Shown: in pieces, positions 1,175 through 61,710 of the stretch
Layout: every line of letters starts with the position of its first letter
Position numbering within the stretch: the first letter of the stretch is position 1
NCBI GenBank assembly: GCA_047495785.1
Contig: JBLDXI010000066.1
Location: 434,001 to 498,000 of the forward strand
Direction: 5' to 3'
Length of the DNA stretch: 64,000 nt
Origin: Lepidodermella squamata
Lineage: Eukaryota > Animalia > Gastrotricha
Made by a program: the position numbers and the translations under genes
The notes under the pieces: generated by a model
Databases searched by the model: none
Seen by the model: only the letters and a program-made list of their open reading frames with translations
Told to the model about the DNA's origin: nothing

Positions 1175-1620
1175 GTGCTAATTGACATGCCTATTGTCAC
1201 CAATAAGCCGAAGAATTGTATCAGAGTTCTTCATGAGATTTTCAACCTGCGAGTTAAGCTATTGCCTGAATTTACAATATCGCGGAAACTCACCGAAGTT
1301 GGGACCAAGAAACTGAAGCTAGATCTCATCAACCGCCAGTTCGTCGTCTACAAGTTCACATGTGGCCAGTGTGACGCTGGAATGACAGCCGGAATGACGG
1401 AGAAGCACCTTCAAGAGCGCGCTGAAAAACATTGGCTGAAGTCAGGCTCGATCGGATAGCATTTGCGCTTACATGAATAGCCTGATGGCTTCAACCTGCA
1501 CGCATGTTTCAAGGTTTTACGCAGTAATGCAGTAACAGATGGGACTGTTTATTGCTTGTTGATAGAGGAAATCAAACTAACATACTCGCAATCAAACGCG
1601 CAATCAGATTATTGAAGCTA
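1175..1620 (+). mobile_element. Penelope-like retroelement 3' remnant (GIY-YIG endonuclease), decayed
   Basis: FVVYKFTCGQCDAG..GMTEKHLQERAEKH matches the PLE GIY-YIG pattern VVYxFxCxxCDAxYVGxTxRHLxxRxxEH. Stops and frameshifts follow. Confidence 0.7.
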
Positions 1621-1639
1621 TATCAGTGCTATTCCTAAT

Positions 1640-1859
1640 TTTGCTGTGGAATTACCATCAGGGCGGTTTTACCATGAGGTACGCACTCGAGAATTGTGCC
1701 CTGTGCCCTTGGCTCCGTAGCCGGCGACACGTCTTCCTGTCAGCTTGATTAACGGTCCCGGAAACGCCGCATTCAATGCGTGGAAGAATGATTGGTGTTG
1801 GCGGAACCCGTGCCTCTTCGCCGACAGTGAGGTGCTTGGACCGCTCGACCACTTGCTCC
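1640..1859 (-). mobile_element. Probable tRNA-derived SINE
   Basis: Minus strand starts GGAGCAAGTGGTCGAGCGGTCCAAG (A-box-like, tRNA-Ser/Leu-like head). A degenerate B-box (ACGGGTTCCGCC) follows. GC-rich relative to the flanks. Confidence 0.45.
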
Positions 1860-1884
1860 TCCTCATAGGACTCGCATTGTTATA

Positions 1885-2069
1885 GACTCGCTAACGGGTG
1901 CTGGCGTCACCAGCTTTTTCACCCGCTCATTCCGCATTGATGTATGACGTATGAAGTATGACAATTTGCGTCATTTTGGCGCTCTCGCTTGCGTCTTATT
2001 GCTTTTCCACTGGGGGAAGTGTCTCATGGTAACCAAATTTTACCATGCCCCTCACTAGAAGCTTCATTA
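1885..2069 (+). repeat. Dispersed repeat that received the 2070-5372 insertion; second copy at about 60835-61060
   Basis: GGGTGCTGGCGTCACCAGC...TACCATGCCCCTCACTAGAAGCTTCATT here versus GGGTGCTCACGTCACCAGC...TACCATGTCCCACACTAGAGACTTCATT in the 60.8-61.0 kb copy. Confidence 0.65.
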
Positions 2070-5000
2070 CATAGAGCGAAGTACTGCTAGGGATGGTAGG
2101 GATTATCCCTGCCAGTTCCATCGGTCCGCAAGGTGAGCTCAGACAAAGACCAAAGGGGGGACCCTTATGCTGATTTTTGTTCCGCGGTTCTACTTCGCTC
2201 TACGGTCTATGATTCGCACTATGGATCAAGAAATGTTCATAGTTGCGCCGGGTCCGTCTTGTCTTCGATTTCGCCATTTCCCTTGTTGGCGCTTGGTCGT
2301 CCATGATGTCGCCCATTACCGGCGCTTTGTCACTAATCAATTGAGTGGTTAAATGGTGACTTAATCGCATATGGGATGCTAAGCACCACAGTCATGCCAA
2401 TTTGCAAACAAGCTTATCGAGCAGGATCATGAAGATTTCAGCTACACTAACTACCTCGGCGATCATGGCTAGGCTCAGGAGGGAATGGAGGCTGTTTGTC
2501 GATGAATGAGGTCAAAACCAAAATTACAGCGTTTTGGACTCAAAAGCTAAGAACAACTCTCAGGCCAGCTGCCTAATCGCACTAGCAGTGGGCGACTTTA
2601 CATTAATGCCTAATAATAATAATACTTAAATTTTTTGCTATTGGATGTTCAAGAATAATATTTAAAAATTATAATTGTTATTATATTTACCACTGGTGCT
2701 AACAAACAATTGCTTCGCATCGTCCCCCACAACCAAGCTAATTTCGGATAGAATGTATGCTCAGTTGTCGACGAGTTAAAAATAAAACTGTCCATAAACA
2801 TCCTCAAGCTGCTCGATCATCCAAAGTTTCATCCAGTCATCCATCCGCTTTTCGTTTTAATTAAAATTGTCAATTAAAACCTTGGTTATGGCTTTCAGAC
2901 TGGCTGTTATCGCGGCGACATTAGGCATTGTCGTTAGTCGTAAGTTACCGTCTCTCTAATCCTTCCAAGGCTCATGTCGATTTCGTCTTTTCAGAAACAA
3001 CTGTCAGCCCTGCGAAGATTGTCGAATGCTCGACTGGAGTGAGCACGACCGACGCGTTCAATACCGACGGCATGCTGTACGATCTCAACTATCGGTATGT
3101 CTACTGCCCCGACGGCAGCTACCTGACCTCGTGGAAGCTCAAATTCACTCCGAATGCGTCTGCTTCGTCTGCCCAGTATGAATACAAGTGCTGCAAGGCG
3201 CCGTCTGTCGGAAAGTGCAGACAGGTTACGAACGACCTGACGGATGGTAATGGCTTTGCTGCTGTCTCCCTCGAAAAACAGGATATCAAGTGCAACGCGA
3301 ATGAGTTTCTGAAAGGCTTCCACCTGACCACATTGTGGAGTCAGATCAGGTTCAACTATGCATGCTGCCAGGTTAGTATCGAGATCGTGTACCAAATTTA
3401 CCTACGAGCTCGTCCCACTTTGGGGGAGGTTTCTGATGGCCAAGGCCTAAGAGTCCAGGAAACGTTCAGATTATCAGGCGCCATCTCACCATCTCACATG
3501 TTTATTTTTCATTTCCAGATTGAAGGCGAATTCGATGTTATTCCCAGGGCGCTAACAACCGATTACGACAAGGAAAGTAACAAAACGACGACCTTAGACC
3601 GCCACAATCTCGCCTGCGCGGACGGTGAGCTCATGCAGAGGTGGCACCTGCAACGCGATGTAGACCAGGGTATGGTGCGCTTTGAATACACATGCGCTAA
3701 AATCAATCTGCGTGAGTTGCAATCCGCACAAGACAGGTTTAAATTGAAAAATATTGCTTCTATGTAGCTCCGAAGTGGTACGAGAAGTGCTCTAATGCCA
3801 CCCTGAAAACCAGACTGGCCGATGACCCTGATGGCAAAACGTACCAGCTCAATTTGCAGACCGTGCAATGTCCCGAGAGGAACTATATCACTTCCTTCGG
3901 ACTGGCCAGGCCTAGCGCAACCACCGTCCAGTACGCGTACACGTGTTGCGCTGCCCCCATGATGCCGGTGTGCCGCGAAATCCAGAACGCTTGGACCCCT
4001 GGCTACTACGGCGACACCAACTTTCTGGACAGGCAAGCTGTCACATGCAAAGCTAACGAAGTCCTGAACCGATTTGTCCTAGTTACCGACCGTCTCACAA
4101 TTGCCGAAGGTTCAATTTCCTACTACTACACCTGCTGCTCGGTGCGAATTTCAGAATTCAAACTGCTACTGTTTTAATAAAATGTGTTTACAGGTCACAG
4201 GTAAGGTCACCACTACCAACCATGTGACTGATGAAATCGACCACAAGGGCAAAACGTTTGCTCTCGCCAACTACCGCCCGACCTGTCCCGACGGCAGGTT
4301 GCTGCAACAGTTTCAACTGAAGCGCGGTCCTGGCGGCAACCACCGATACGAGTACACCTGTGCTAAGGTCGAGGAGTGAATCGGACAAGAGGAGCAGGTT
4401 GCAGTTTAGTCGAGAAATTGATGGTAAATTATGGTTGAAGGGAATAAATCGTAATCATTCATTAATCGAGGCGGTTGATAGTCAGCAGATTAATGATCAG
4501 CGTTGAATAAAATATAACAAGACATAATGTGTGAACATTTTGATTCAGGAAGTCCTCCCATCTCGTGATTCCTAGTCACCCTCTTGTCTATCCTCTATTT
4601 ATTCGTACAGTTCTGAGCTAGCTTTCGACGCACGGTTTATAAGATTTTTCGACCTCCCGAAAACATACAAGGGATATTACGAAAAATTCCGGGCACTTGG
4701 AGCGTTAACAGAAACTTTGATCAACACTATGTCTAGCACCACCTGCGAGGAAATACTTCCAAACCATGTTGCTAATCACCTAGATAGCGTGGCGAATGCT
4801 GTCCCCAATGTGAGTCATGAAATATAAAGTAACTGTACCTATTTATTGATTCTCATGATTCTGATAATTGATCCTCATTTATTCAAAATATCTGTGAACG
4901 ATCTAGGCCTAGTTTTTAAACATCCGAAAATTGGCCGAAAATTCTTCGTAAAAATAAAAAAATACCACTCAGGGTGTATCTCAGGGAGCTCGAACTGACT

Positions 5001-5372
5001 GGGTTTGGTGTAATCCTAAAATCCGACTCCCTTTAACGAATGAACGATATCCAATTGGAATAAATCTATGCCTCTGACTCAACGAGAATCTGAACTTTCG
5101 AAGAAGCTCAATAATTTTAACGTTAATGTGGAGCCAATGTTGTTGTTGTTTTGTATTGTCAATATCAAAATGGACAAATGGAATTTGAACCGGACTGAAT
5201 TTAACTCTGATTTTTCTGCCGGCTATGAGTGGATTGCCCGATTAACATTGTTGTGAGCGTTCGGCTTAAGCTCTTAAATAAAAGACTTAAGCTCTTAAAT
5301 GAATGAATAAAAGCTTCCCTTATGTCGATTTTCCTTATCCCTATCAGTTCCGCGGTCCTACTTCGCTCTATG
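2070..5372. mobile_element. Non-autonomous 3.3-kb DNA transposon (hAT/P-type) carrying a complete host-like gene
   Basis: Perfect 14-bp TIRs: CATAGAGCGAAGTA (2070-2083) and TACTTCGCTCTATG (5359-5372). Perfect 8-bp TSD CTTCATTA at 2062-2069 and 5373-5380. No transposase seen inside. An internal second right end sits at about 2190-2204. Confidence 0.9.
2888..4379 (+). CDS. Secreted Cys-rich protein of about 393 aa with six ~50-aa repeats (two three-repeat domains; lectin- or dermatopontin-like organisation is inferred)
   Basis: Exons 2888-2939, 2995-3371, 3519-3711, 3768-4141 and 4194-4379 join in frame with GT-AG introns. Signal peptide MAFRLAVIAATLGIVVS. Repeat consensus T-x(8-10)-L-[DN]-x3-C-x5-L-x2-[FW]-x-L-x(7-12)-[YF]-x-Y-x-C-[CA]. 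AATAAA at about 4443. Confidence 0.85.
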
Positions 5373-6566
5373 CTTCATTATATCCAAGTTGTTAGCAAGC
5401 TAGACCGCTTCATTAATTTCCCTTCACCTACTTAATATCACAGGACCTTTGATAGCGGAGGAAAGATGAAAGCATGGATAGACGGCCCCTAATTTCGCGC
5501 AATTCTATACCACTCATCGTGAACTGAAAACTGAAGCGAATCAGCCCGCGGAGCAGTTCATGGCGGCCGGGTGGTGCGGAAGTTGGCCCATTTTCGACTT
5601 GGCATTTTCAGCTGAATCGACGGTAAAAAGCTCGCTTCAACCGCGAATATTACTTCACCAGGGTCCAATTTGACACTCGTCAGCAATTTTCATCATTTTG
5701 GGCTAAACATGAAGAGCAATTAAGTGTATTTGAACAGTCTAGTGAAGTTGAACAGTCTAGTTTAGGCGTTCAGGAGAAAAGCTTTAGAGCCGCTGAAGCA
5801 ATCGCTTGTCTTGATGGTAAAGGAAATTCAGAGTAGGGAGGATGTCAATCGTTCATAGAATTTCGAATGAACATCAATAAGAACCCAAGCGTGCAGTGAT
5901 TTAAGAAAAATAATCTACCATCGGTATGATTGAGAATTTACCAAAGTATTTCTGCATTGTTTCTACCGCATCAGATGAAAAAAACAAAAAGCGAGAAAAT
6001 CGCTGATGTTTTCAAAGCGCATCAATGTCAGACCGCGTTCACTGTTCGTTGACAGAAGGTTCAGCTTGAGAACATGAAATAAAGCCAGTGGAAGCTGTGG
6101 AATCGGCTTGAAGCAGCACTTCATTTATGGGCGTAATATTATAGGGTGGTAGTAAATCAGGTCGAAAAGTTATTAATAACATGAATCATCACTCACTATC
6201 GAAGAGGTATTGTTAGAGCATATACTATCGCATGTTTTTAATATTCAGCGCATCGACCACCTTAATGAATCAATAAAAGTGTCGACCGAAAAGTTCCTAT
6301 GTTCTCCAAGTATATTATAAGCAAGATGTCCAACCACCGCAGACAAAACGTCGTTAGCGACGCGCTAAAACAATGCTTCGATGACTCATTCGATCCTATA
6401 AGGAGCCTAACAAAATGATGCAATGCATTCAGTTTTTCGAGCACTAGTCGTGTAGATCATCATTTTAATTTACGTTCAAGTGTCTCACATTTCGTTAAAA
6501 GAACTAGAAATTATTAAGTTCTTCTTCTTTGGGACTTCTTTCGGTTCAACGCTATAACGATAAACA

Positions 6567-8638: not shown

Positions 8639-9387
8639 AAAGTATGCGTAATATTTTTTTGCATCGCATTTTTTCAACAACTTTTCAACCATGAGGAATT
8701 TTTTAAAGTGGTTTTCACCAGTCGATAGATCTAGTCTGCGGTAAACTTTCCTCACATTTTCATTTGAATTGGGTGCGAGAGAAAAAATTGGTGACGAAAG
8801 TTCTGTCCGCGATTTTTACTGAAAATTCTCATTTTTGAAAAATGGCATTTTACAGGATTTGAGGTTGGAAGACATCATCCTGTTGAAAGGCTTTATCGGA
8901 ATTTTTTTAGCAGGGAATTAGGTCAATAACGCGCTGTCAACAAGGAAATTCAACTTAGCGGCCACAAAGAAGGTCTTATCCACCAAACCCGATCCGAAAT
9001 GAATTTTCGGAATTGTTTGAATGATTTGTGCCAATTTTATGAAGCCTTCAGTTTTGGATGGTTGTACAATGTTTTTTCAGGAATCGGTGACGTAGATCCA
9101 TTACGGACCATCCTCTCAAAAAAGCTTGAAGCCTCTGGTAAGAGAGACAATCAATTCAGACCAAATAAGATGCAAAAATGCCATTTTTCAAAAATTAGAA
9201 TTTTCAGTAAAAATCGCGGACAGAACTTTCGTCACCAATTTTTTCTCTCGCACCCAATTCAAATGAAAATTTGAGAAAAGTTTACCGCAGACTAGATCTA
9301 TCGACTGGTGAAAACCACTTTAAAAAATTCCTCATGGTTGAAAAGTTATTGAAAAAATGCGATGCAAAAAAAATATTACGCATACTT
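8639..9387. mobile_element. Long-TIR (about 215 bp) non-autonomous DNA transposon / foldback
   Basis: 8639-8851 is the near-perfect reverse complement of 9175-9387 (AAGTATGCGTAATATTTTTTTGCATCGC...). Flanked by TA, or by degenerate TTAA. Confidence 0.85.
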
Positions 9388-21766: not shown

Positions 21767-23643
21767 ATACTGGATTGGAGGGAACTTTTATCGCTGCATC
21801 GGCTCGCCATCACCAGTTTATTATTTCTCCTTTTTCGGGTTTGCCGCAGCGATGACTACACAGAACGTGATCTTCAAGGTAAAAATGGCTCTTTTTTTTC
21901 AAAATCGTAAAAAAGTCCAATTTTTAGAGACAATTTTTTTACGACATTCACGAAATAAAATAAAATTATTTGTAATTTTCACACATTAAAAAAATCCACC
22001 TAAAAATTTGACCCAATTTTTCTGTAAAATTTTCAAAAATATTTTGAAAGAAAAATTCGTGGGGCGTCAACTCATCCGCGGTCAACTCGTCCGCGACAAC
22101 TCATCCGCGACAACTCGTCCAGCGACAACTCATCCGAAATTAAATAAATATGTTAATAATTATTTTTAGTGACAACTCATCCGGTGACAACTGGTCCGGC
22201 CCGGCCAAGTTGTCGCGGATGAGTTGACACTATAATTAAATAATTAATATTTTTTTAATTTTTACAATTTTCGGACAACTCGTCCACGGACAAGTCATCC
22301 GCGACAACTCATCCTGAATTTACTAACTCATGTTATATTTCGAATTTCGGACGAGTTGACCGTGGACGAGTTGTCCGAAAATTGTAAAAATTAAAAAATA
22401 ATTAATTATTTAATTTTAGTGTCAACTCATCCGCGGCAACTCGGCCGGGCCGGACCAGTTGTCACCGGATGAGTTGTCACTAAAAATAATTATTAACATA
22501 TTTATTTAATTTCGGATGAGTTGTCGCTGGACGAGTTGTCGCGGATGAGTTGTCACCGGATGACTTGTCGCGGACGAGTTGACATTTCACCGAAAAATTA
22601 TCAAGTTTTGAATTAATTTACAAAAGAAATTTTCTAATATTCCTTGAATTTCGACGAATTTCGTCTTTCAAAGGGACCACAATTAGCAACACGCCCCAAT
22701 TAAATCGAGATTCCAGCACTGAATTATCCATGCGTCCTAACTGGCACTGAAATTTCTTGGATTTCAATTCTTTTATCGATACTAATTGAACCTATGACCC
22801 AATTTAATTACCAGGTCCGAGACGGACGCATTGAAAATGATTCCACCCATCGGATATCGGATATCCATCACATGCTAATATCGGAAAAATCACCGATTTT
22901 TGAAATCGATATCGATATATTATAAAGTATAATTCATCTTAATTGACCGCCGTTAATAAATTATTCCTAGATCCAAAATAATTTTTACTGGAACCCTAAA
23001 TTTGGATTGTCAACTTTTCAATTTCAAATTAAATTTTATTCAAAGTTTCAAATTTCAATGTCAATTTTTTATAATTTACCTTAATTTTTAATAATTTTAT
23101 AACTTTTGAAAATGATCGATTTTTTTTGCTGTGATTGCAGTCGATCTTTCAACCAATTCCTGGTGCAATAGGCCCGATCCGGTTACAATAGTTCCCTTTC
23201 AGTTGGCTTTCATCTTCTCAAACAAGGCCGCCACGCCGCCGCGGTGCTCGCTAACGTTCCAAGCCGGCAAAAAGACAACAGGATCGCTCTACCTCAAATG
23301 GCGGCGCGACTTCAACGACCAAGCCGACCTAATAGTCGAAACGCGGCCGTCTATCAACGACTCGTGGTCTAGCTTGAAGCTGAACGACAACGTGCGAAGT
23401 GATACATACCTTAGACTAACACTGGTGAACGACGCGAGGCGGCGGCTTGATTTTCGAGTCGATTTATCAGCCGAAATGCGGGATGAGTACATTGGAATTA
23501 GGGTCATGCTGTTTTTCGTCGTCATGGGCCCAACTCTCGTATTGACAACGTTCATTTTTGTGTACTACTGGCGCAAAGATCGAGTCTACAACCAAGGTTA
23601 CTTACCTGTAGCTACGTCAGATAGCTTCTATGAAGATTTCTAG
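21767..23643 (+). CDS. Type-I membrane protein family, divergent member D (start codon not resolved)
   Basis: Signal-like exon ending at 21878 (LAITSLLFLLFRVCRS-DDYTERDLQ), phase-1 intron 21879-23140, exon 23141-23643 VDLSTNSWC...PPRCSLTFQA...TM...GYLPV..SFYEDF*. Confidence 0.75.
22058..22592. mobile_element. Palindromic foldback MITE with about 15-bp subrepeats (GACAACTCRTCCGC), inside an intron
   Basis: The left half is the reverse complement of the right half. Flanked by (G)AAAAATT on both sides. Confidence 0.85.
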
Positions 23644-26323: not shown

Positions 26324-29300
26324 CGGTGAATAGTAAGTTCGTACCCGCAAATTCGTAACGTGATCTTTTCGTAACAAACAGGTATCTTTTCGTACAACAT
26401 TTAGTGATCTTTTCGTAACACATTTTCGTATCAAAATCAAATTTTTCAAATTAATTTGGTGATCTTTTCATAACAAATTAAGACGAAGTTGTGATCGATT
26501 CGTAACGCTTTTAATATTGTTTAATAATAGCATCCCAGAGCTCTGTTGTTCCTGGTTGTAGTGTAGAACCTATCGGGAATTAACAGGGATTGGGCAGATT
26601 TGGTCTCGGGAGTTGAACTAAGGCTGCTTGGGGCGCGACTTCGGCTGTCGAGTTTGAGGAGGCTGGCGGAAGCGGAACTGGCTGAACAAATGGTTGAACT
26701 TGAGGTTGAGTAGTAGCGTTGCTAAGGGTTACACTTGCTGCCGAGGATGAAGCGGTGTTATCAGAAGGATTATCAGCAGTATCTATAGGGCGACTTCGCT
26801 CCCTCGTTCGCTCCCGCCCAACTCAGGGAGCGAACGAGGGCGAACGAGAGCGAACGCAGGTGTAAACGCGTGCGCGCGCACCAAGTAGATCGATCTAACG
26901 CAATTTCATTAAAAATCACCGATTTATGTCATTTTGCGCTCTAAATTTGCGGAATTCATATGCACAATGAATGTTTTTTAGCCAAGATTTTCGAAATTCT
27001 ATCGAATGGTGTCAAATTGAGCAAATTTCACGAAAATGAGCAACATTTCAAGTTAGCTAACATTTGTAGCCAATCGATAAATGCCATTACTTAGAAAATA
27101 ACTGTGAAAAAACGAATATATCACTGTACGAATTTACGGTTACGAACTTACTATGAATCATTTACTTTGGATTTTTGGGTGATTTGATTTGAAATGATTG
27201 ATTTAACAAGACCTGTGATTTACTGAAGAAATCAAATCAAAGTCACTGGTTCAACGAAAAATTCTGAAATTTGAAGCAAAGGTGGACAAGATGGTTTCCG
27301 ATTTGCCTACCAAGGTTGAGAATTTTTGCCTGATTTTTGATCATTTCAAACCAAAAATATACCGGAAAAATCCGGAAAACACCGGAAAAGCATTTTTCAG
27401 GGTTTTTTAATCCCATAATATTTTCGCACAGCTCTCAATTTGCTAGAACTATGATTCTAGGCCGAGATCCGAGATTATGCTTGCATACCTGGACATTGCT
27501 TCGAGTAGAATAAATATAAAGCCAGTAAACCTTACAGGTAACGAAAACGAGCCCCATTTAGCTCCGAACTAAAAAAGTTCCCCCTTAAATTATTTTATGC
27601 TTTATTTTAGAAATAAATTGCGTAGTGTTGTTTCGGAAACCTGTGTTTGATCGTTGCCGACTTGGAATACAAAAACTAGATACCTAGTAGTATTGTGTAA
27701 GTAGTAAGTAGTAGTATTGTGCGTGAATTTTTTGAAATTTATAAAAATTATTGTTAAATTTAAAAAATTCAATTCGACTAAAAAATAAAATTTAATTTTT
27801 CCTTTCCAACGCTAAAAAAACTCAAGTATAGGACTCGCATGGTCAGAACTGTGACAGGTTCCAGTAAAAATGAGAAATAACTAAACGGAAACAATGATAT
27901 GGAATAGCCGCGAGTTATATAAGGAATATATTTGTCCCTTGTGATAAGGCTAAAATAATACGATCGGCTTTATCGCATGTGTATAGCAAGTCCCACCATT
28001 GAGCTTATAATATTACAAACCAATTTTTGTGTTTTTTTGATAAAAAAAAAAGGTGCAAATGGCTCGTTCCGCTTATTTTGTGATACTGGTTGCTGCTTTA
28101 ATTGCATGCACAGGTAATAAATACTACCTATAATAATTTTTAATTGTGCCATCTTGTGGGTGAAAATTTTATTGATTAAATTGATAGCAAAATTAATCGG
28201 GCATTCCAACGAATTATTCACTTATTCCAAGTAAAAGCTGAAAAATAAGCTTATTTATTTATTTATTTTTCTATGAATTTAGCTGCCATCAAGTGCTATC
28301 AAGGAACTAGCGATACCAAGTATGACGAGGTTGATGGCTGCGTAGTTTGCCAGAAAATCGTCGCTGAAATAGCCGGCCTCGAAGGCACATCGAAGGCGTG
28401 CATGAAAACCGATCCCGGACTAGGGCTCGACTGCAAAACAACGACGATTGCAGGCGCCACCGACACGACGTGCTACTGCAACACCGACCTGTGCAACACC
28501 GCTGGTCACGTGGCTAGCGCCAAGGCCGCAATCACGGCTGCGTTAATCATCGCTGCTTATTTCGTGATGTGAACATACGCGCGCGAATTATTCGTGATTA
28601 TTTTGAAATTTAAATAATTTTGATTTCTGCTCATTTGCAATAATGTGCTGATTTGATATGATACGAATTACGCTTATTTTCACAGGCGTATATTTCGAAC
28701 GGAATCAGAAAATAAACAGCTATTTTTGAATAAATCGACGTTTTTTAATCACAAATAAAATTGAGAATTTTTTTACCCATCCAGTGGCGCTTCAGGAACA
28801 TGTTTGACAATCATCTGTCGACATTTTCTCCCGAAATTTCACTTGAAAATCGTTCAAATCGAAGAATAATTTTCTCGTCAGAAAAATATTCTTTTTCTCA
28901 GAAAAATATGTTATTCGATTCATAGTAAGTTCGTAACCGTAAATTCGTACAGTGGTATATTCGTAACAAATCATTTTCATACAGAGTAAATTCGTACCAA
29001 TACATTTTCGGATTTAAAGTAGTGAACTTTTCGTAACAAGAAAAAATATCATGATTTTGATTCGAAAGTGGTGATCTTTTCGTAACCAGGCGGAAATAAT
29101 AACACAGAAAGGTGGTCTTTTCGATGCGGACGGGTGATATGATGTAACCTTCTAGCATTTGAATACCATTAAATCACTAATAATCTAAGCCCTCATTCAT
29201 CTGCTATTCCGGAAGATGCGTTGTCATATTTGTAACCATACTTGTAATAGTGCACCCGGGTGCTCCCTAACCGCCCGGTTGATTCTCGATTTTTTTTTAT

Positions 29301-30045
29301 GTTATTCGATAGCCAAAGATCTAAATTAGATGGCAGGCCACAAGCGCCGTTCCAGAAAAAATCACCCAGCGAGAAAAACCCCGCAAATGTGGCCCTATTT
29401 CGCGAACTCGAGCCCACTCTCATTTTTAGGACGGGTTTGATGAGGCCTAAGGCGCCTTGGAGCCGGTCTAAGGCGCCTTGCATCATGATTCATCATTCCA
29501 AGGCGTCTTAGAGGGCTGTGATTCACTGTGATTCACGTCTTACGAAAATACAGGGCGCCTTAGGCTAAGACGCCTTTATGCGGTTTTTTTGCATTACGCT
29601 AGCCAAGGATCTAAATTAGAAGGCAGGTCACCAGCGCCGGTCCAGATAAAACTAACATCACCCGCACGATTTTGTGGCATAAAACCCCTAGCGGTATCAA
29701 GCTATTCCTGGTGACCTGCTAAGGCACCCTTAGTAAGGAAGTTCAACATGACGGAACTACGAGCAATGACAACAACAGTTTTTCCAACATGTTTAGCCTC
29801 AGCCTCACGTTGAAAACTGTTATTATTGCTCAAAAATGCTATTTTCAATCAATATTAAAAGCGTTACGAATCGATCACAACTTCGTCTTAATTTGTTATG
29901 AAAAGATCACCAAATTAATTTGGAAAATTTGATTTTGATACGAAAATGTGTTACGAAAAGATCACTAAATGTAGTACGAAAAGATACCTGTTTGTTACGA
30001 AAAGATCACGTTACGAATTTGCGGGTACGAACTTACTATTCACCC
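26324..30045. mobile_element. Pair of about 195-bp near-identical inverted termini (MULE/foldback-like) with a second inner pair of related ends
   Basis: 26325-26519 is the reverse complement of 29850-30044 (GGTGAATAGTAAGTTCGTACCCGC...). Inner ends 27110-27159 and 28917-28965 (GATTCATAGTAAGTTCGTAACCG) are also mutually inverted. No TSD found. Confidence 0.75.
28283..28572 (+). CDS. Ly6/uPAR (three-finger, Quiver-like) GPI-anchored protein, main exon
   Basis: AIKCYQG...CVVCQK...KAC...C...TCYCNTDLCN followed by a hydrophobic GPI-type tail. Phase-1 acceptor at 28282. No convincing signal-peptide exon found. Confidence 0.85.
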
Positions 30046-33895: not shown

Positions 33896-36372
33896 ATGGC
33901 AAAAGTTCTCAAAATTCTCATAGTAACGATTGCCTCCAATGTTTCCGCTGAATTCATATTCAGAGGGAAGTGCTCTAATTACTTCCTCGCCCAAGATATC
34001 GCGTTGAACGTTGATACAACCGATTTAGCTTGGAACCTCTACGTGATAAGAGGCACGAGTCGAAGCGTCGCAAATCAAGAACAATGCGAAACGCGATGCC
34101 TTGCGACCTCGTCACCACCGTGTCGCACGGCTTTCTATGTCCCTAGCCGCTTGGAATGCTGGCTTCTCAGGGCAGATAAGGACACAGCGATTGGGTTTGA
34201 TCGCGATCGCGAGGATGTAACTTCGGGAATTTTGATCGCTCCGCAGACGATAGGGGAGGGTGTGTCGGACCGAACCACGGGTATTGATGGCTGCGACGAC
34301 TTCTGTCCTGCAATCAGCCAGCCCTCAGCCGATGCCATCTCCCCAGTTTGCTTAAAGGATTGTCCAAACAACGAATCTTACTGCGCTGGTAGGGGATCAT
34401 ACAGTTATAGGTTTGTGACGAATTATTTCACGCGTTGTTATAGGTGAAATGGCTTCGTGCTTTGATGTCCCGAGGCGAGTCACGGTCATACAAAACAGGG
34501 CCGTATTTTCGCCTCGATCTGCCAGCGCCTATCCCTTTCAACTTTGGGTGAGTCATGAATCTATTTGAGACCTAAACAAATAATATTTTTCTCAGACAAT
34601 GTCCGTGACCAAAAAGCATGACTTCACCCATTTCCGCATTCATATATCAATCGGGGCTTGGAATAATTTCAATTCAAACCCCGGATGTTGCCCGCTACGG
34701 GACAGCTACGTCTATGTTACAATTAACGGTATCAACTGCGCTGGGGATGACAATATCTTCTGGGTCCTAGAAAGCGAATTCTACGACACACATAGCAGCG
34801 ATACTTTCAGCAAGTCATTGCACGGTGAATTCCCATGCACGCTCACAGACTTTCCAGCTGGAACTTATCAAGTCGTTTTCTATTACGACTATCGCTCCTT
34901 CGGCATGAGCCAGGGCAATGGAGCTAATATCGGCATGACTGTTAATGGCGTTTCGCCTCCCCACTTCATTTGGGTCGAGGAGTACATACCCTCAGACTAT
35001 TTCTTTAAATTGGGTTTGCAAAGTTCGTGAAAACCTCAGGTTTTACAATTGACTTTCGACAGATGACACGGCTAGGTGCCAGAGCGCGACTGTGAGTGTT
35101 CCCTACTGTCCATAGTTTGATCTTCTCGAAATATTCCCTAGGTCTATAATACAGTTTCTAAGCAATGGAAAGCTTTGAATTTCAATGGATGGCTTACTGG
35201 TGGAATGACTGACTGGGTTGGCTGATTATTTGAAATTTCAATATAATTTCAAGATTTCCTCCTTAAAAGGCAATTTGGAAGTACAAAAAGCGATCTGATA
35301 CTTCGTTGCTGCGAATTTACTGGCAAGGGACAGTTCTTCTGAACCTTTACGACCGCTGCATACGATTTTACTTCACAATCAACGACCGACTTTGCACTGA
35401 CCCTTACTCTATCGAAACTGTCTATAAGGAATTGACGTACGGAACTGGAACGAGCCGAGTTGGTCCATCCGGCTACACAATCGAACGTTGGTATCTCTTT
35501 ACGTAATTCACAGCTGAGGTACCTTTTCATTCCTTAGTTGATGGCGTGTGTCGCAATTTGCCAGCTGGGAAGTACGATATCAGGTTGTGGTGGGACCACA
35601 ATTGCGCCTACTATACAGATGGAGGCTCTGGGGGTAGCATCGATATCGGGAGAACGAAGCCATCCGGGATGATAGTCGAAGAAATTCACGAAAATCTACC
35701 CATCAACGTCTGTAAGTCTGATACGTTAAGGCTGATACGTTAAGGCAGTGATTATCTTGTTGCCATTCAGTTTTACTCAATGATGGAAGTGCCCTTCTTC
35801 TGCCCTACTTCAACAGGCGATATTATTCGATTACTGAAGGATGCAGAGCGCTGGCTGGTTCAGCCTGTTTAAGCCCTATCACGGTGAGCCTATTCAAGCA
35901 TCGGGTACATGTTTAACGTTTCCTGATTTTTTCAGACAAGGACGTATAACAAACTTCAAAACGCATCCTCCCTGCACGTAAAATGGTACGGAATGCAAGA
36001 AATGTGCACGAATGGAAATAATAATAATGAGGGGACGCGCTTCTACATCACAATCAATGGCGCTGATTGCACGAGCCCACAGCGCATCGAGTCCTGGTGG
36101 TACTTATACGGATTGGCTTACGGAGTATGTCGAGCTATGCCGAGTGTCGGTAAGCATGTTTAAATTCGATTCAATTCGTTCATTCGTACAAATTTGAAAT
36201 AGTGGAGGGCATTTGTCGCGGTCCGATACCAGCTGGGGCTGTAACAATAGGACTTACGATCGGCAAGGTCGACACAGCTGGTGGCTGGGGATCTTTCAAC
36301 AAGATTTACTCGGCTACCCTTGGTGGAGCGTCCTACTTAATGGTTGAAGAAACCTACGATGGGAATCTGTAA
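33896..36372 (+). CDS. Secreted protein: signal peptide + PAN/apple domain + three CTHRC1 C-terminal-like domains (multi-exon)
   Basis: PAN: EQCETRCLATSSPPCRTAFY...ECWL. Three repeats of K-x4-S-x-L-[RH]-[IV]...R-F-Y-x-T-I-N-x2-C-x2-P-x2-I-E...[DE]-G-x-C-R-x-[LI]-P-A-G...V-E-E at about 34600-35000, 35270-35700 and 35936-36372. Some exon borders are approximate. Confidence 0.75.
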
Positions 36373-38128
36373 CTGAACGCTGAAGGCTGCGAAAGGGATT
36401 ACAGTGTGACTATCATTAATGTATTATGATGAAATTATGCGGTAATATCGCTGTGCGATAATTAACAATAATACCTGTGAGGTCATATGGATTAGGACTA
36501 TTGTAAAGAACAGGACTCAAGCTTGATATACAAGATTTACATGGTTTGCTAGCAAAGCCTTTGTTTTGTTCTCCGAAATAAACTGTCGGATTTAATAAAT
36601 GAAGAGTTATCTTCTTTTTCTTCTGATTTAGGCTCAGCTCTCGTCAGCAGATTTTTCCTCGCCCAGGCAAACTCCGGATGTTGCCATAAGACTGGTCTAA
36701 GGCTGGTTCGATGGCGTCTAAAGTTAATGACCAATGCCAGCCGAGAACAAAGTTTTTGATTCAGTGGTATCACAACGATGTTATTCCAAACAAAGTTCAT
36801 TCAAGTCGTCAATACTTTTTGCTCAATGTATAATTACGCTATTGTTAGCTTGACGGAATGCCTGTTAACGTCGATTGAGATGATGAAACTGGGTTAAATC
36901 ATGAGACGTAGGTAGGACGCGGAAGCTTGAACCCTGCCATGCTGACTGAAGTGTTGGCGTTTGAATACGCATGAATATTCTGCATATTTTACAGCTTGAA
37001 AAATAAAAATGACAGGGTTTAATAATTATATTAAAATAAATAATTACTGACAATTTGTATAAAAATTAGAAAGGTCAAGTTCTAAAAGCTACAGGAAACT
37101 GTAAGGTTCCATGGTAACCAGGCTGGATCCAGGTTCCCGGAAACCGTTCAGGTCAAGATCTTGGAGGACGATGGCAAACGATGGTCTAAACTGTTGGCTG
37201 ATGAACATGTTTGCATGACATGTTTTGGAATAAATTCCGCTTTGATTAATTGACACATGGCGTAGTTCTAGGTTTGTTACGCAATGAACCGGGAACACAG
37301 CCTAAGTAAAAAGTAATTCGTCTGCGAGTATTTTCTAGTGGATTTTCCTCAATTGATGAGTAAATCCCCATTGAAAGAAGGCCTGTTTTTTAAAGCGTCC
37401 CATCATTTATATCGCCCGTTTGTAGATCGGCCAAGTTTTGCCTGATTTCACCCCGAAGACAAGGCAATTGCAGCCTAGGCGATCGGCCACCAGATTGGCC
37501 ACCGGATTCTCAAATTTGACTGGAACTAGCTGCTATTCATGCTATTACATCGCAAAAATGCAGTTATTCTTTCGGCCTTTCAATTTACTGAGGCGAGTTC
37601 CAGCTAAAATGAGCCAAAAGCTGCTCATTTGCTTGTCAAGTTCGTCGACAAAACTGGAGCATAGATCTCAATTCAGCCCAGCCTAAGGTTATTTCAATCG
37701 TTTATTTATTTTTCTCTAGTCATGCCAACTTAAACTTTTTACCTGAAACATGAAAGTTAGGCGGGAGCTTATGCCGGATTTTTCATTTCGACTTTCGATT
37801 AGCTACAGTAACTAGCTAATAGAAAGCTGACAATTATTTCATTTATGAATAAGATTCCCGACTGCAGATTCAAGGGAAATTTCATGAATTTGCTATTTTT
37901 TCTGGGAATTTTCTGGATTATTCGTATAATTCAAGGGATTTTATTCAGCCACGTTGATTCCCGGATCCATTTTGTCACGAGGTCAACAAGCAACACAGAT
38001 ATTGGTTTTATTCAGCAATTTTATTTACAAAATAATTTGGATATTTGTTTCATCTCGCCCGAAGGCTCTGCCCGGTTTTTCACTTATAATGCTAAGCATT
38101 TGTTCGATTTAGCTATATTTTATTCTAA

Positions 38129-41100
38129 ATGTTACTGACCACATTGAATTTATTCTTTGTGGCTGTCTTCCTCGGCGAGGATCCTCTCGCCTTGCTGGAT
38201 TTGGGAGCTACGATTTTTAGCCTGGTTCTCATTGTCGTTTCAATTTCCCTGCTCGTCACTGGAGCTGTTCTCTTGTTTGCCTGTGTATGGATTTATTCCG
38301 GTAAAGGAGGGTGGCGAAAAGTCTTGTTATTCGCCATTCTATGCCAGGCTGGTACGGACTTTGACTACCAGCGAAACTCCATGAGAGTTTCGGATGAGCA
38401 ATACGAATGTTCGCATTCGCCGCAAATACTGTCGCATTCTTGCAGTTCGATGGATCTCGGGTAAATTAATCAAAAATTATGATATCCAACATGTTATTTT
38501 TCGATTTTTACGTGAAGCATCGGATCTTGTGATCCATTTGCATACAGCTACTTCAAAGCGACGTTGCTTTTGCGGAGTGGCGATGTAATTTATCTGTGGA
38601 ATTAAGACCATTTGAAAAAATATAATTTAACCTTGCTTAGGTTCAGTCGAACCCAGGCCCCGCGATAAAGTTCACGTCATTATCGCATGGCAAAAGCATT
38701 GCTAGTTCGAGCGGCCTAGCGTTACCCGGAAATACGTCTTGGCAACAGGAGGAAACGACACCTCGTGTACCTCATACCCGAAAAATCAAGGATGATACGT
38801 TACCTGGTAAAATATTTCTTCCCTTTATGATGGTAAGATGCATCCTAATGTTATAGAAATTCCGGAAAAACGAATTTTTGTCGAACAACCTGCTGCTGCT
38901 ATCATCCTTCAACCCAATTTCGCCACCAAGAGAGCCGCAATAGCAACAGCCGAAAATACTAGACTTTACGCGCCAACAGTCGCTGAATTGAGAGCGGCTG
39001 GATTTTCTGGTAAACCCGACGAAAATCTTCGAGTCGTTAGACTCACTCAAGCCAAAGGGAAACAGCGCATGGTGACGAATTCTACCTGTAAATCAAGCTG
39101 CGCATCCGTTGTGAAAGAAAATGCTAGATTGCGAAGGGAAAATCGATCATTGAGTAATACTCTGGCTACTTATCGAAGTAGAGCGAAAATGCGTAAAATC
39201 AAGTCGAAATGCCGGAAAAATCGTCGATTTACTAGCACTGCGACTCAAGCTGATATGCCTATCGAGATAGTCCACGCCCCGAAAAAGCACTTGACAAGTG
39301 ATGAGTTACAGGAACTGCTGACTCTTCAACACCGCCTTCGAAATATTGAATCAGTACATGCTATCAGGTATTCAAATAAAGCCGGCGAGATTCTCATGAG
39401 GGTAGCCTTAACAATCCACTCCATCAGTTCGAAGGCGTACGATTTTCTCAGAGATTCAGCAATCCTAATGTTACCTCACTCCTCCACCATTAACGCGGTC
39501 ACACCAGTCGATTACGAACCCGGAATTTCGGAAAGCTGCTTGATAATGCTCGCTGAACAAATCAAATCTTCTACTAAACCTGAAAGTTATCGACTGGGCC
39601 TGATATCATTAGATGCCATGTCAATATCAGGCGGCTTAGAGATTGTTGATAAGGGTAATACAATTGTGGGGATGTCCCTGGATGAACCTGGAACACCAGC
39701 TACGCAGTGTTTGTCCATCGTCCTGAAATATGTCGAAAATGTTACTACTGTAAACGTCGCCAATTTTCCAATGGTTAATATGCCTGTGGACAGAATTTCT
39801 CTTTTCTTGAAAAAGACAATCGAGAAATTGTTTCAATTGCCAACCCCAGTAATTGTTATCGCTGCGACGTGGGATGGCGCTGGAGAAAACTGGTCGTTGT
39901 ACAATGGCCTGGTAAAACACTTCGGATCTGATGGTTTTCCTCATCCTTTCGCTGAAGGCGTGAAAGTTCACCTGCTATTCGACCCGCCTCACATTTTGAA
40001 AATTTGTCGAAATGCTATAATTCATAAAAAGGTAGGCTCATGGGTTTCCTGAATGTCTTTCTAACGCCAATTTTTCTATGTGATTTTTTCAAATTAATAG
40101 ATTTGAAACGTAATTAAATTTAGTTTAAAAAAAATAAAATTTTAAAATTTTAAAAATGTTATATTTCAAACATACTTAATTAAAATTGAAAATAAACCAT
40201 TTAAAATAAAAAATTAGAATAAAATTCCTGGAAATATCTATAGGATAATTTTTTGAATTTCCAACTGTCATCCAATATTTTCACATTTTTTGTTATTTAT
40301 TGGACATTTTATTTGTAAAAATTTACAGTTGATCATCAACTTCGCAAATATCGACTGGCCTAAGTACTCAGCTGTGATGGAGCAGAAGCTAATCGATAAG
40401 TTTCCGAAAATTGGGAAAGGTCGTGTAAACTGGGCCTACATTGTTGAGATATTTGAGCGAGATCGTAATCGCCTCGTCCAAAGGAGCACCAAGCTATCTC
40501 GCCATAGTGTTTATGCCGTCCAACGGAAAAGTGCGCCACAAAAAATGAAAGTTTCGTATGCGGCCCAGACTTTGTCTCGTTCTGTTGCCATTGAAATTCT
40601 TCTTACTCACCCCGATGATTTGGACGCAGCAGCAACCGCGTTTTTTTGTCTTCTTATCGACGCGTGGTTTGATTGTTTCAACGGAGAGAGTAACTCCCAG
40701 GGTACGAGCAAGCCAGAATCCTACACCTGGAAGCCTAACCTGGCTCCATACGAAGACCCGAACGACAAAAGATTAATTTGGCTCTTGGAAACATTTGTGC
40801 CGTTGATCAAAACTATAAATGCTGATAACAAATCAGACAAAACCACTCTTTCCTGGCAGGCGAATCGAGCCTTAATCGAGACTTCTACCAACATGGCTGC
40901 TCTCATTAGATTCGCTTTATCGCAGGGTGTCCAGAGATTTTACCCAGCCAGGGCTAACCAAGACGCAAACGAAATGTTATTCAACCAGTTCCGGCGGGAC
41001 GGAAATTCTTCGAAATCAAATCCCACTTTTCGGGCAATTCAGAGACGTGCCGGCACATTGCGAGTTGCAGGTGGTTATTGGGGAGTTTCCCGCGGTGGTA

Positions 41101-41609
41101 ATGTGGAATCTAGGGGCGCTGTCGGATCCTTAGACTTGAAATGTGCCCGGAAATTGAAGAAAATGGCCTGGGAGAAGGCGAAGATGTCCAGTGTTCACCG
41201 GATTCATTTACCAAGCCACCTTACGTTTGACCATAATACAATCACTTGGATTGCGGGCTTCCTAACGAAAAAACTGGGCCTGAAACCAACCGATGCTTTC
41301 CACAGTGATTACGTGGAACTTCGATCGAGAGGCGGTGCCACCCAGCCAAATGGCGATGTTTTGTGCGTCGTTAAGGTCGCTCTGTCGGCCTGCTATCGAG
41401 AAGACCTTGTCATCTTCAAAAAATTGGACGATGTAGCCCTGCGTTTGGGACATCAAGTAACAAAAATTAAAGACAAATCTATAATTTTACCAATTTTATG
41501 CCGGCTTAAGTATATTCTTGCCCGAAGAACTGTACGATTTTATCGCGAGAAATTCGGGGCATCCTCTGTGTCTCTTCGCTCGAGCTTGAAACAATTCAAG
41601 AAGGACTGA
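38129..41609 (+). CDS. P-element (THAP9-like) transposase of about 1006 aa, preceded by a signal/TM module and a 2A-like peptide; no THAP domain
   Basis: Exons 38129-38460, 38518-38584, 38641-38806, 38857-40031 and 40329-41609 are phase-compatible and stop-free (3021 nt). P-transposase motifs LISLDAMSI, TWDGAGEN, FDPPHILKICRN, KMKVSYAAQTLSRSVA, WFDCFN, NQDANEMLF...NPT, WIAGFL, SRGG. The transposase identity is firm; the 5' exons are a manual model. Confidence 0.85.
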
Positions 41610-43020
41610 AAATTCTCTAATCTGTTGAATTCATCTCAGTTATGTGTTCAATTTATCGAATTCATCAAATTTTCAATTAGCCAATTAGTCTTCGATTTTT
41701 CCTCTTTATTTTCGGCTTTATTAACTTGAACTGTTTCACTTTTGAGACCTAGGCTTGGCAAATTGTGTTGCGAAATCTCATCAGCCTGATCTTTACTCTA
41801 CTGTACCACTTTATTTAGTTTCTTCGTATTTCATTTTCACGGCGAAATTAATGTAATATCCAATGGGAGAAGTGACATTGTTGTGTTTTATCCTTCCAAT
41901 TTTGAAAAGGCAGTCTAAATCTGTCGCATTGAGCAATTATTGTGGCGAAGTTTCAAATTTCCACGTCTCGATTTTTATTCAAGCGAAAAATAATAAAAAT
42001 AAAGAAAACGTGTTTTTATGAGCAGTTGACTCGTTGCCATATGGCGATCGGCGTGCAATTTAATGAGATGATTCATCTCATTATTTTCTCCAAGTGATCT
42101 TTGACCCTAATTATCTCTGCCAACACTTTTTTCTCGTAAACAACCCAGCTGCGGCGTCCTAGCTACGTCTCATGCTTTTTCCTGGTTTGAAATTACGACC
42201 GATGATGTATGATCATCCAACGGCTTTACAACAGCTGCTCGTTTCAAAGCAGCCATTGATTTAAATAAATTCTCCTGAAAAATATTTAGAAAAAAAACGG
42301 AATTGAAATTACTTTTGGGATAATAAAAAAATTAAAATGTACTTGTCTTTAGTTAATTTGAGCGCTTTGAGACGTGATGTATTGAGCTGTGATAAAAGCT
42401 TGCTATTCATGCCTCACTTAGCAACCTCGCACTTGAAAAACCCAGAAAAAAACCGCTAAGGTAATTCTCGCTCTGGGCAAACATGAAGCGGGAAAAATGA
42501 AAAAGCCAAGAATAATCTGAAAAATTGCTTCATTTTATTGAAAGGTGTCTAATAAATGAGCTATGAAAAAGGTAGAAAATTGAAAAATAGCTAAAAATAT
42601 CATCTATAGATGAGCGATTAGTTTCATCGAGCAGTCACGTTTCGTCGTTGTTGTTGTTGTTGTGATGGCGTTGTAGTAGTGGCGGGTGGCTTCTTCTCGG
42701 CTGGTTTCTTTCGCGGCCACAACGAGTACAAGATGATAGCATTTATCTCGCCAATGAGCTTGAATAAAAAATTAAAAAATATTAAGAGTTTTTTTGGAAA
42801 ATTTGGAAGTGTCATCGATATCGATTTTGCGCGAACCTGTGATCTAACCGCCGAAAGCATTTCGCATTTCGTAGTAAATCTCATATTGCCGATGAATTTT
42901 TTCTTTGAGAGCGGCTTCCTAGCTATTTCTCTAATCTATTAGTGTCAATTCGCGTATCACGTGACCGAAAAATGTGAGAATATAAAATTCTTGCTCCCCA
43001 ATTTTTTCTCTATACACAAA

Positions 43021-47600: not shown

Positions 47601-48399
47601 CCGCTGAATTGTTTGTTAATATCATAAATGTTCCGAATATACCGAAAAACTCCATTTTCTGGACAGAATGCATCCATAGCAGCAGCAAGTGAAAAACCGC
47701 GGTGACCCCCCAAAAAGTCACGGTAGCTAAGAAGTATTTACTCTGCTTTACAAGAAAACATCGAGATGCAGTGTTTTTTACGGGTGATTTGTAGCCATGG
47801 ACCACCTTGAACATGGTGATATTGAGATCTTTACTCTGAAAGACCGATTGGCTGTTCGGGCAAGCTTGCTAAAAATAACCATCATCCTAAAGAAAGGCTG
47901 TGGTCATCTTGTAGAGAATACATAACTATACTTAGAAACACTGTTTCCGCAAGGTATTACCGCACTTAGGTTAAAGTTTCTGGGGTTAAACGCCCAAGAA
48001 CTGCGAAAAACGTCACAAAAAAGGCTTGTTTAGGCTTAGCGGTTACATCTAATTGAGCCATATTTAGAAAAAAAGACGCCGGCTGCCATATTAAATGCTT
48101 GAAATGCTGTCAGAAAAACACTAACAAAGGTGTCGTCACCGGTGATAAAATGCGGAATTACGGGGGAGAAGTTGCGCGCCAGGAAACTTGCGGTGCGCGG
48201 AGCGGCTACAACGCGAAAACGCGCGGCATCGCGCAGCACGCTTTTCCGTAGCAACAAAATTGTTATTTAAAAAAAATTATTAATATAATAAAATAAAAAT
48301 ATTTTTAAAAGGATATTTAATTTTGTGCATAAAATTTTGCGGTAGCACGCGATTTTCCAACGCGCGCGGCGGATGTTCGGTTTCGAAAGGAACACCCTG
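44685..48399. mobile_element. Tc1/mariner-type non-autonomous 3.7-kb element with non-transposase interior
   Basis: TA|CAGGGTGTTCCTTTCACAACCGAACATCC ... GGATGTTCGGTTTCGAAAGGAACACCCTG|TA. No DD34D/E ORF inside. Confidence 0.85.
46712..47830 (-). repeat. Three diverged tandem ~370-bp units encoding a decayed hydrophobic protein segment
   Basis: Each unit reads FLV[EK]Q..Y...GVT.VF...[EG]FFG.[FI]G...[MI]L.[ND]...V[RK]L.L...LLRD...[LM]TIKQ[EK]K[AV]G, with internal stops. Confidence 0.75.
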
Positions 48400-48604
48400 T
48401 ACAAAAAAACTGGCAGTAAAAAATCGTTAATTAATTGACTGATTGGTAAAAGATGTGATAAATTGATCGAACGAGGTTTCTAGACGTCATTTATTATTCC
48501 GCTGTGTGGTGGTATGTAGCGACAACAAACCTTAGACACAGTTGGGTAGTGATCGATCGAAACGCAACACGCTGCAGTATTCAGTTTAGATTCAGAGAAA
48601 AAAG

Positions 48605-51087: not shown

Positions 51088-52332
51088 CATGCGTGGTGCT
51101 GGACTGTGAAGCAAGACAATTCAAATTACTGACAATCCTCACCTTCAATTCTCATCTTTGATCTCTGTCTGCTATACCTATCTAAACAAACAACTCTTTT
51201 AAATAAAATAATTTCGAGTGTTTGAATGCACAGTTTTCCATTTATTATTTCGCTCGCACTGTTTTCCTAGTTGGTAGCATATCAAAATGGCGAGTAGAAG
51301 AAACGGTATGAATTTCGTAATTTACGCAACCGATAAGGGCGACACAAGCAGCTGAGCAATTCAACCGATGACTCAGCTTCACATTTTCATAATCATAAAA
51401 CAAAACCCCTCTTTAACCATCAGTTCAGTAAAGCATCAAAATTTCAAATGAGCTTGAGGAATGTTGTGAAAAGCCATTAACTTTATTGGGGAGCTAATAG
51501 GGAATCAGAATCATTAGGTACTCATACGATCTTAGTTCAACCCCTATCTTAATAATACGAAACCTATAACAAAATTCAAGTTTTTTTCAGGCTTACGTCT
51601 TCAGTCTTCAGCATCAACCTCGCATTTTCAGTATTTGGGCTAAGAAAGTCAGAACATCGCAAAATACTGAGCGTACGACGCCGAAAGCAGAGCGGGGATA
51701 ATTGCACGGAAACCCGGTTTCGGTATGTTTATTTGCTGAAAGATGTCTTTATAGAAGCAAGTGGGATGAAAGCCTCCCTGCTGTAAAGAGCTATATACAG
51801 GATATGGCTTACTTTATGCTAGCTTTTCTAGCTAGCCGTTTTTATATCATAGCCATATGTCTATCGGATTTCAGAATTTCAAAATGTAACTAATTTTGAA
51901 CAAATAATTCTAGCGAAGGTTTGGCAGCTTTCAAGGCGTAGGTTGTAGTCCATCCAATAGAGGTGTCCGCATTTCTAAGACTTCAGCTACAATGTTCTCG
52001 GTGACAAACTAGCCTTTCGGCTGATATGTAAATCTGTCTTGCCCCAGGTCAAAGTTTATTTACCATATAATATAGTTGTAGTAGCATGAATTGGCACGTA
52101 AATCATCATAGAAAAAAGCTATGCGTCATTGGCGCCATGGGCAGCTGAGTACTTGAAGCTACTAAACATATTGTTTTCTCACTCTTCTTTCTTGAAAAAA
52201 CCTATTACCAAAGGCTTATCCTCTCAAACACGACTAGAAGGGCGCAAGCTATAAAACCGCTTTTTACCACTATTCTAGAGCTCAACTAGTGAAATTGTAA
52301 CGTGAAATTGTAACTTGTTTGAATAATAGAAA

Positions 52333-54310: not shown

Positions 54311-54423
54311 TTACAATGCCTTGTTAAAAAGCTTCCTTAATTACAATGAAAACAATGAAAAGCTGAAGCAGGGCTATTAAAAAAGCTTCATTGTTAAATG
54401 CAAATAAACTTCCAGTTTTTAAC

Positions 54424-61548: not shown

Positions 61549-61710
61549 CAGAGTGCGAAGTACAGGGGTGCTGGGGTGTCGCACCCCAGCTCAGGGACTC
61601 CAATCAGAGGAAGGCTGAAAAAACCCCAGGGGGACCCTTTGGTTTCTTCGGCTGGGTCCTTGAATACAAGTAGAAAACACCTAAGCTCCCGGATCCTACT
61701 TCGTACACTG
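61549..61710. mobile_element. MITE, same family as 312-486
   Basis: TSD ACTTCACT at 61541-61548 and 61711-61718. Ends CAGAGTGCGAAGTAC and CCTACTTCGTACACTG. Confidence 0.92.

Follow-up and report, generated by a model that had tools for sequence, protein, structure and literature searches.

A probable MITE-derived composite element carrying a complete dermatopontin-like gene in the gastrotrich Lepidodermella squamata: a candidate animal Pack-TIR

Transposons that enclose host sequence between terminal inverted repeats (TIRs) are a known class in animals. A survey of 100 animal genomes found 370 of these Pack-TIRs, mainly of the hAT and Tc/mariner superfamilies, and nearly all were fragmentary and single-copy (Tan et al. 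2021, Nat Commun, PMC8277862). A few families are both multi-copy and protein-coding, for example Ssk-FB4 in Drosophila. The survey's pipeline drops cases in which the parent sequence is linked to a transposable element, and its authors state that products of end bypass may be missed (PMC8277862). Here we describe a candidate of this class in a 64,000-nucleotide stretch of the gastrotrich Lepidodermella squamata (GenBank assembly GCA_047495785.1, contig JBLDXI010000066.1, positions 434,001 to 498,000 of the forward strand), hereafter the window. The element holds a dermatopontin-like gene between the ends of a miniature inverted-repeat transposable element (MITE) family. As in the surveyed Pack-TIRs, for which hAT is the commonest carrier, the ends of a TIR family and a target site duplication (TSD) surround host sequence and no transposase is present. 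Those elements, however, are mostly short, usually single-copy and give chimeric transcripts with host genes (PMC8277862), whereas this one carries an entire gene of five exons, complete with promoter and polyadenylation signals. A sequence-only reading of the window had called such captures rarely documented in animals. In view of the 370 surveyed cases that wording calls for some qualification, although most of them are fragments and most occur as a single copy.

End bypass has been demonstrated in Drosophila with an induced P element (Tsubota and Huong 1991, cited in PMC8277862). In that citation's account, the transposon takes its adjacent flank along because a sequence further downstream acts as second end, and the TSD lies at the outermost ends only, as it does here. 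That event was induced in the laboratory and used a fortuitous distal sequence, whereas the present locus has a natural MITE, probably hAT-like, and a distal end that is a genuine end of its family. The Ac macrotransposons of maize can excise, insert again and multiply (Huang and Dooner 2008 and Wang et al. 2022, as described in PMC9910405). There, DNA that lies between the 5′ end of one element and the 3′ end of another, the two being in direct orientation, is mobilised with an 8-bp TSD, a layout shared by this locus. The maize cases involve 10-28 kb, an autonomous Ac and a fractured Ac in a plant; the animal locus spans 3.3 kb and combines a 135-bp MITE with a 56-bp solo end. Plant Pack-MULEs, or Pack-TYPE elements, are likewise non-autonomous TIR elements with host coding DNA (PMC8903248). 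They carry mostly gene fragments or shuffled exons, with 9-11 bp TSDs and parents unlinked to transposable elements, in contrast to the single contiguous intact gene and 8-bp TSD found here. The class itself is thus already known in animals; what is new is that a MITE-derived composite, probably multi-copy, carries a multi-exon gene that is complete and self-sufficient.

The outer boundaries of the element are as follows.

2062 to 2069, unstranded: left TSD copy, CTTCATTA, which belongs to the host repeat (the other repeat copy reads CTTCATT at 61012-61018)
2070 to 2083, plus strand: left TIR, CATAGAGCGAAGTA, directly abutting the left TSD
5359 to 5372: right TIR, the exact reverse complement of the left TIR
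5373 to 5380, unstranded: right TSD copy, CTTCATTA

Together, perfect 14-bp TIRs and a perfect, non-palindromic 8-bp TSD enclose 3,303 bp. We scanned the whole window for inverted repeats of at least 10 nt lying within 6 kb of each other and flanked by identical 8-mers, with 20 shuffles of the window as a control. The pair at 2070-2083 and 5359-5372 was the window's sole inverted-repeat pair with identical non-palindromic 8-mer flanks, and none of the 20 shuffles yielded an inverted repeat with identical flanking 8-mers. The coordinates, the scan and the shuffles thus bear out the TIRs and TSD that the sequence-only reading had placed around 3.3 kb. One could instead suppose a resident gene with unrelated MITE pieces on either side and an 8-mer match by chance. 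The MITE family is abundant, and a 14-nt inverted repeat is by itself unremarkable in 64 kb because ∼486 pairs of at least 10 nt arise by chance in each shuffle. The probability of an exact eight-of-eight non-palindromic match abutting both termini is ∼1.5e-5, however, and we regard this alternative as extremely improbable. Inverted-repeat pairs of at least 12 nt with palindromic outer 8-mers (TAGATCTA, ATAATTAT and AATTAATT) occur at 8734-9292, 22164-22485 and 26457-29912; these may be other TIR elements or foldbacks.

Within these boundaries, the element is composite.

2070 to 2204, plus strand: complete MITE of 135 bp (left end plus inner right end), with a 12-nt perfect inverted repeat at 2072-2083 and 2191-2202
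2161 to 2204, plus strand: inner right end (R′), degenerate, with the tip CTACG rather than CTATG and the ATCCCT..CAGTTCC subterminal block missing
2205 to 5316: non-transposon DNA between R′ and the outer right end
4512 to 5316, plus strand: non-coding tail of the cargo, downstream of the 3′ untranslated region (UTR)
5317 to 5372, plus strand: solo outer right end of the MITE family, 56 bp, with the subterminal block (5337-5351) and the right TIR

The inner right end is damaged at two places. Its tip has CG in place of CA and has lost the terminal CA, and the block TTATCCCTnnCAGTTCC, present in the left end (2103-2119) and in the outer right end (5335-5351), is absent from it. The inner MITE also has no TSD of its own: GTCTATGA rather than CTTCATTA comes after 2204, which further tells against a resident gene between unrelated MITE pieces. 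The locus therefore has the anatomy of a macrotransposon or end-bypass product, with a complete element on one side, a compatible distal end on the other and a TSD at the outermost ends only. It also has that of a Pack-TIR, as the TSD lies directly at the termini and the interior is a host gene with no transposase. No transposase or other Pfam domain was found in interior open reading frames (ORFs) outside the cargo gene. Sequence comparison hence upholds three points of the sequence-only reading: a full MITE in the first ∼135 bp with its right end repeated at 5317-5372, a TSD at the outer end only, and no transposase. Part of the cargo tail (4867-5316) is repeated elsewhere, with higher depth and loose contig ends at 4867 and 5112 in the DNA run introduced next.

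The ends belong to a real transposon family, as seen in a public DNA run from another individual whose contigs were placed on 1500-5900. Many of these contigs link ∼2154-2177 straight to 5317-5343, with few variable letters between, so the usual family member is a ∼150-bp MITE that combines the left 90 bp of the present element with its right 56 bp. Six contigs lose their match at 2073 and seven directly after 5372, with unlike sequence beyond; both termini are therefore exact family ends. Depth over the left end is ∼9000 as against ∼70 for single-copy flanks, or ∼100 times single-copy. From these contigs and depths, the termini of the composite are those of a bona fide TIR transposon family. 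Other copies have CAG immediately ahead of 2073, which makes CAGAG the probable common left tip of the family. An autonomous partner would be expected to have CA[G/T]AG[A/T]GCGAAGTA ends and the AGGGAT/ATCCCT subterminal motif. The window contains one related element.

61549 to 61710 (61541 to 61718 with TSD), plus strand: related MITE of 162 bp, with TIRs CAGAGTGCGAAGTA and CAGTGTACGAAGTA and a perfect 8-bp TSD, ACTTCACT

Its internal layout matches that of the MITE in the composite, and its tips read CAGAG and CAGTG.

The TIRs of hAT elements begin 5′-YARNG, and P is the other superfamily with 8-bp TSDs. Both the composite and the MITE at 61549-61710 have the 8-bp TSD of hAT elements. The ends in the window read CATAG, which departs from YARNG at position 3 and counts against hAT; other copies probably read CAGAG. 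Because 8-bp TSDs occur together with CAGAG-type tips, hAT is favoured: the family is probably hAT, and P is a less likely assignment. No hAT transposase with matching ends lies within the window.

A P-superfamily remnant at 36886-42188 contains two ORFs (38838-40052 and 40290-41609) with Tnp_P_element helix-turn-helix, TNP-like RNase H and GTP-binding insertion domains. Imperfect 42-nt inverted repeats with CATGAGACGTAG at their core flank it, and a clean 8-bp TSD was not observed. Its transposase (38838-41609), the only P-type one in the window, was considered as a partner for the MITE and rejected, as its ends (CATGAGACGTAG..) differ and it has no subterminal similarity to the MITE.

The element sits in a repeat of which the window holds two copies.

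1860 to 2061, plus strand: host repeat, with a depth of 1000-1900 in the second individual as against ∼70 for single-copy flanks
60813 to 61018, plus strand: second, uninterrupted host-repeat copy, ∼73% identical and informative for the left flank only

Positions 1860-2068 align with 60813-61018 at ∼73% identity, and the alignment ends at CTTCATT. Since the left flank aligns to the other repeat copy up to the TSD, the left TSD copy is ordinary host sequence; this extension of the repeat right to the TSD is again at odds with a resident gene. The host repeat is probably a multi-copy, short interspersed element (SINE)-like sequence. Its left part (1750-1860) has a B-box-like GGAACCCG, which other copies read as GGGGATTGAACCCG, with loose contig ends at 1804, and this box-like sequence suggests a tRNA-derived SINE. 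ARAGORN and Rfam scans of the window found nothing. A 60-bp tandem repeat with about two copies occupies 60500-60620, just upstream of the second host-repeat copy.

The cargo is an intact gene, as the sequence-only reading had proposed, with an upstream region and a polyadenylation signal. Its ORF and its splicing in contigs from a public RNA run, which were also used for transcript ends, place its parts as follows.

2205 to 2887, plus strand: upstream region with promoter; transcript 5′ end near 2838-2842
2888 to 2939, plus strand: exon 1, with start codon and signal peptide; intron 1 is skipped in RNA (2939 joined to 2995)
2995 to 3371, plus strand: exon 2, by ORF and RNA
3519 to 3711, plus strand: exon 3, closing the first dermatopontin-like domain; intron 2 is skipped in RNA
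3768 to 4141, plus strand: exon 4, by ORF and RNA
4194 to 4379, plus strand: exon 5, with stop codon; intron 4 is skipped in RNA
4380 to 4511, plus strand: 3′ UTR, with AATAAA at 4443 and 4506

The five exons encode a 393-residue ORF, and all introns run from GT to AG. RNA contigs skip introns 1, 2 and 4 at the exact GT..AG sites, confirming three of the four; intron 3 is supported by its GT..AG borders and the reading frame. In one RNA contig, a template-switch oligo tail immediately precedes 2842. This marks a capped 5′ end near 2840 and places the start of the transcript 630 nt into the element, ∼50 nt ahead of the ATG. RNA depth stops near 4440-4470, close to the AATAAA at 4443. Because the transcript start, transcript end and splice sites all fall inside the element, the promoter, introns and polyadenylation signal lie within it. 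Among the listed coding differences, 7 of 12 are synonymous as against 22% expected (P=0.008), and the remainder are conservative. An extra first exon at ∼4731-4811 in the tail was considered and dropped, as copies in the second individual have frame-breaking indels and no RNA maps there. Copies in the second individual also carry a 34-bp insertion at 3413, in intron 2, relative to the window.

The predicted product is a secreted protein with two dermatopontin-like domains in tandem, each of three repeats. The N-terminus of the 393-residue protein is hydrophobic, 20 of its residues are cysteines, and its sequence is internally duplicated, such that exons 2-3 and exons 4-5 are 28-35% identical. 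Queries for the protein and structure searches consisted of the exons with an in-frame read-through of intron 2, in place of the spliced protein. No cargo exon matched the Pfam DERM profile (PF14704) at E up to 1, the cargo protein had no Pfam match of any kind, and a word-indexed protein search with the cargo found nothing. An exhaustive search of a collection of 15 billion proteins returned 462 distant relatives with an identity of at most ∼32-41%; because the best identity is only ∼41%, the species' own proteins lie outside that collection. These relatives share a thrice-repeated unit, YLDRH..C...Y.Y.C, and 6 of 40 sequence homologues match Pfam DERM (best 2.4e-07).

Structure prediction likewise points to the dermatopontin fold. 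The model of the first half has a predicted local distance difference test (pLDDT) score of 74.6, with ordered parts above 85 and the read-through intron as the sole low-confidence stretch. Its top Foldseek matches are dermatopontins, with probability 1.0 and template-modelling (TM) scores of 0.40 by query and 0.46-0.60 by hit. The best structural matches are human, bovine, mouse, pig and snail dermatopontins, Limulus hemagglutinin/aggregation factor and Millepora cytotoxin-1; weaker PDB matches are to the PCSK9 C-terminal domain. On this modelling, the cargo would be a dermatopontin-fold protein that falls short of the family's Pfam model and differs from the family in having two three-repeat domains in tandem.

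The interior of the element is present in several copies in the second individual. Near-identical interior contigs span 2703-4917 and include upstream, exon, intron and downstream sequence. Their depth is 237-373, while the two flank contigs have 69.4 and 71.4, a 3.3-5.3-fold excess that, contig depth being only a rough measure of copy number, argues for about four copies. At least three interior variants occur at several sites. The excess extends uniformly over non-transcribed parts, which argues for DNA copy number rather than expression. Contigs from the DNA and RNA runs together imply diverged paralogues as well as near-identical cargo copies. A multi-copy interior, non-coding parts included, between single-copy flanks is also not what a resident gene would give.

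The same locus is occupied in that individual. A contig at flank depth begins with exactly 30 nt (k-1, the k-mer length less one) of the cargo tail ending at 5155, then eight filler letters, GCCATTTT, then sequence from 5399 onward. It follows from this junction that the cargo occupies the same locus there, and from its end at 5155 that other copies extend past that position. The corresponding 243-bp deletion (5156-5398) takes out the right TIR and the TSD together with 18 bp of the flank; with its filler, it could be the scar of an imprecise or abortive excision, or a plain deletion. A 100-nt query across the intact right junction recovered two of six sampled words in this run, which fits the deletion. 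Those two words, the multi-copy interior and the high-copy repeats at its ends might also fit an assembly chimera, in which a gene from elsewhere was stitched into a simple MITE insertion through MITE copies. We consider a chimera highly improbable, as the independent junction contig ties the cargo tail (to 5155) to the single-copy right flank, modern reads easily span a 135-bp repeat, and the TSD and both junctions would require two coordinated mis-joins.

We think it probable, on balance, that a hAT-like (possibly P-like) MITE gave rise to this locus by use of a distal end, that is, by end bypass. The locus would then be a cut-and-paste element of composite, non-autonomous type, either a Pack-TIR or a small macrotransposon. 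At the donor locus, a 135-bp MITE would have lain ∼0.7 kb upstream of a dermatopontin-like gene. The MITE's own right end would have been crippled by the change of CA to CG at its tip and the loss of the ATCCCT..CAGTTCC block. A transposase supplied in trans would then have used the good left end together with the next intact right end, the solo one 3.1 kb downstream. The whole 3,303 bp would have integrated into CTTCATTA within a repeat, duplicating those 8 bp and carrying the gene with its promoter, four introns and polyadenylation signals. As the gene would travel with these signals, each new copy could be expressed. The sequence-only reading had likewise proposed a skipped near end and a distal one used in its place. 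The anatomy, the reality of the family, the doubly defective inner end and the multi-copy interior in the second individual agree with it; the order of events is inferred, and gap filling would give the same structure.

Under gap filling, no transposition of the gene would be needed. A resident MITE at CTTCATTA would have been broken or excised and then repaired off another MITE copy, with synthesis running through that copy's right end (R′) into a 3.1-kb gene flank before rejoining at 5317. This predicts the exact order seen, with a left end, R′, foreign flank, a right end and one TSD, and the outer right end begins at 5317, where canonical copies resume. Moreover, most animal Pack-TIRs are single-copy products of gap filling (Tan et al., PMC8277862). 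The gap-filled inserts in that survey are mostly short fragments copied from within 15 kb, however, and here neither the 59 kb downstream nor the 2 kb upstream contains a parent copy. The interior depth of ∼4 times that of the flanks, with its several variants, suggests earlier or later spread. We therefore hold gap filling to be unlikely, though it deserves more weight than a chimera or a resident gene. Even by this route, the product is a gene between functional ends.

Several results weigh against a composite element that moved and multiplied. The right flank aligns with sequence from 61019 onward no better than shuffles do (103/300), so the contiguity of the two flanks is unproven; the 'diverged empty site' that the sequence-only reading saw near 60.8-61.06 kb is supported by the left flank (∼73%) only. 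No other copy of the cargo or element was found in the window by tblastn of the cargo or by sensitive blastn of every part, and the 64-kb window holds no second full copy with a different TSD, no donor locus and no autonomous partner. Scans of metagenome contigs with a protein pattern and with a degenerate right-end DNA pattern were both empty. The second individual differs from the window at 20 of 1856 interior positions (1.1%) as against 0 of 754 flank positions. At many interior sites, none of its contigs has the window letter, and none of its copies equals the window copy. Gene conversion among copies is one possibility for this contrast between interior and flank. The count of about four copies is itself rough. 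Lastly, RNA contigs are 1-2% different from the window copy, and for that reason expression is demonstrated for the gene in the species and not for this copy in particular; the sequence-only reading had called for a check of cargo expression, which thus found spliced RNA at species level.

If the composite element is what it appears to be, it would show that working genes of animals can be duplicated by cut-and-paste elements, much as they are by retroposition and segmental duplication. The locus would also offer a concrete case from nature of end bypass or macrotransposon formation, a route demonstrated to date by experiment for P and Ac. The contrast between a defective inner end and an intact distal one also makes a testable prediction about the sequences that the transposase requires. 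A stronger version, which we offer tentatively and think somewhat doubtful, is that the composite is currently or very recently active and is spreading an intact, self-promoted gene for a secreted dermatopontin-like protein to several loci. In that event, whole-gene family expansion by cut-and-paste transposition would be in progress in an animal, and the 243-bp deletion in the second individual would be an abortive excision scar.

Other features of the window lie well downstream of the element. An intronless ORF for a Kv-type potassium channel occupies 55312-57021 on the minus strand and adjoins a 2-oxoglutarate (2OG)-Fe(II) oxygenase ORF at 54391-55230; the presence of the channel ORF accords with an animal genome. 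A PAN-domain ORF lies at 33896-34447. The region 48000-52000 has a strong AT skew (+0.19 to +0.20) and raised GC, and contains long ORFs at 48605-49405 and 50169-50910 that are without a Pfam match.

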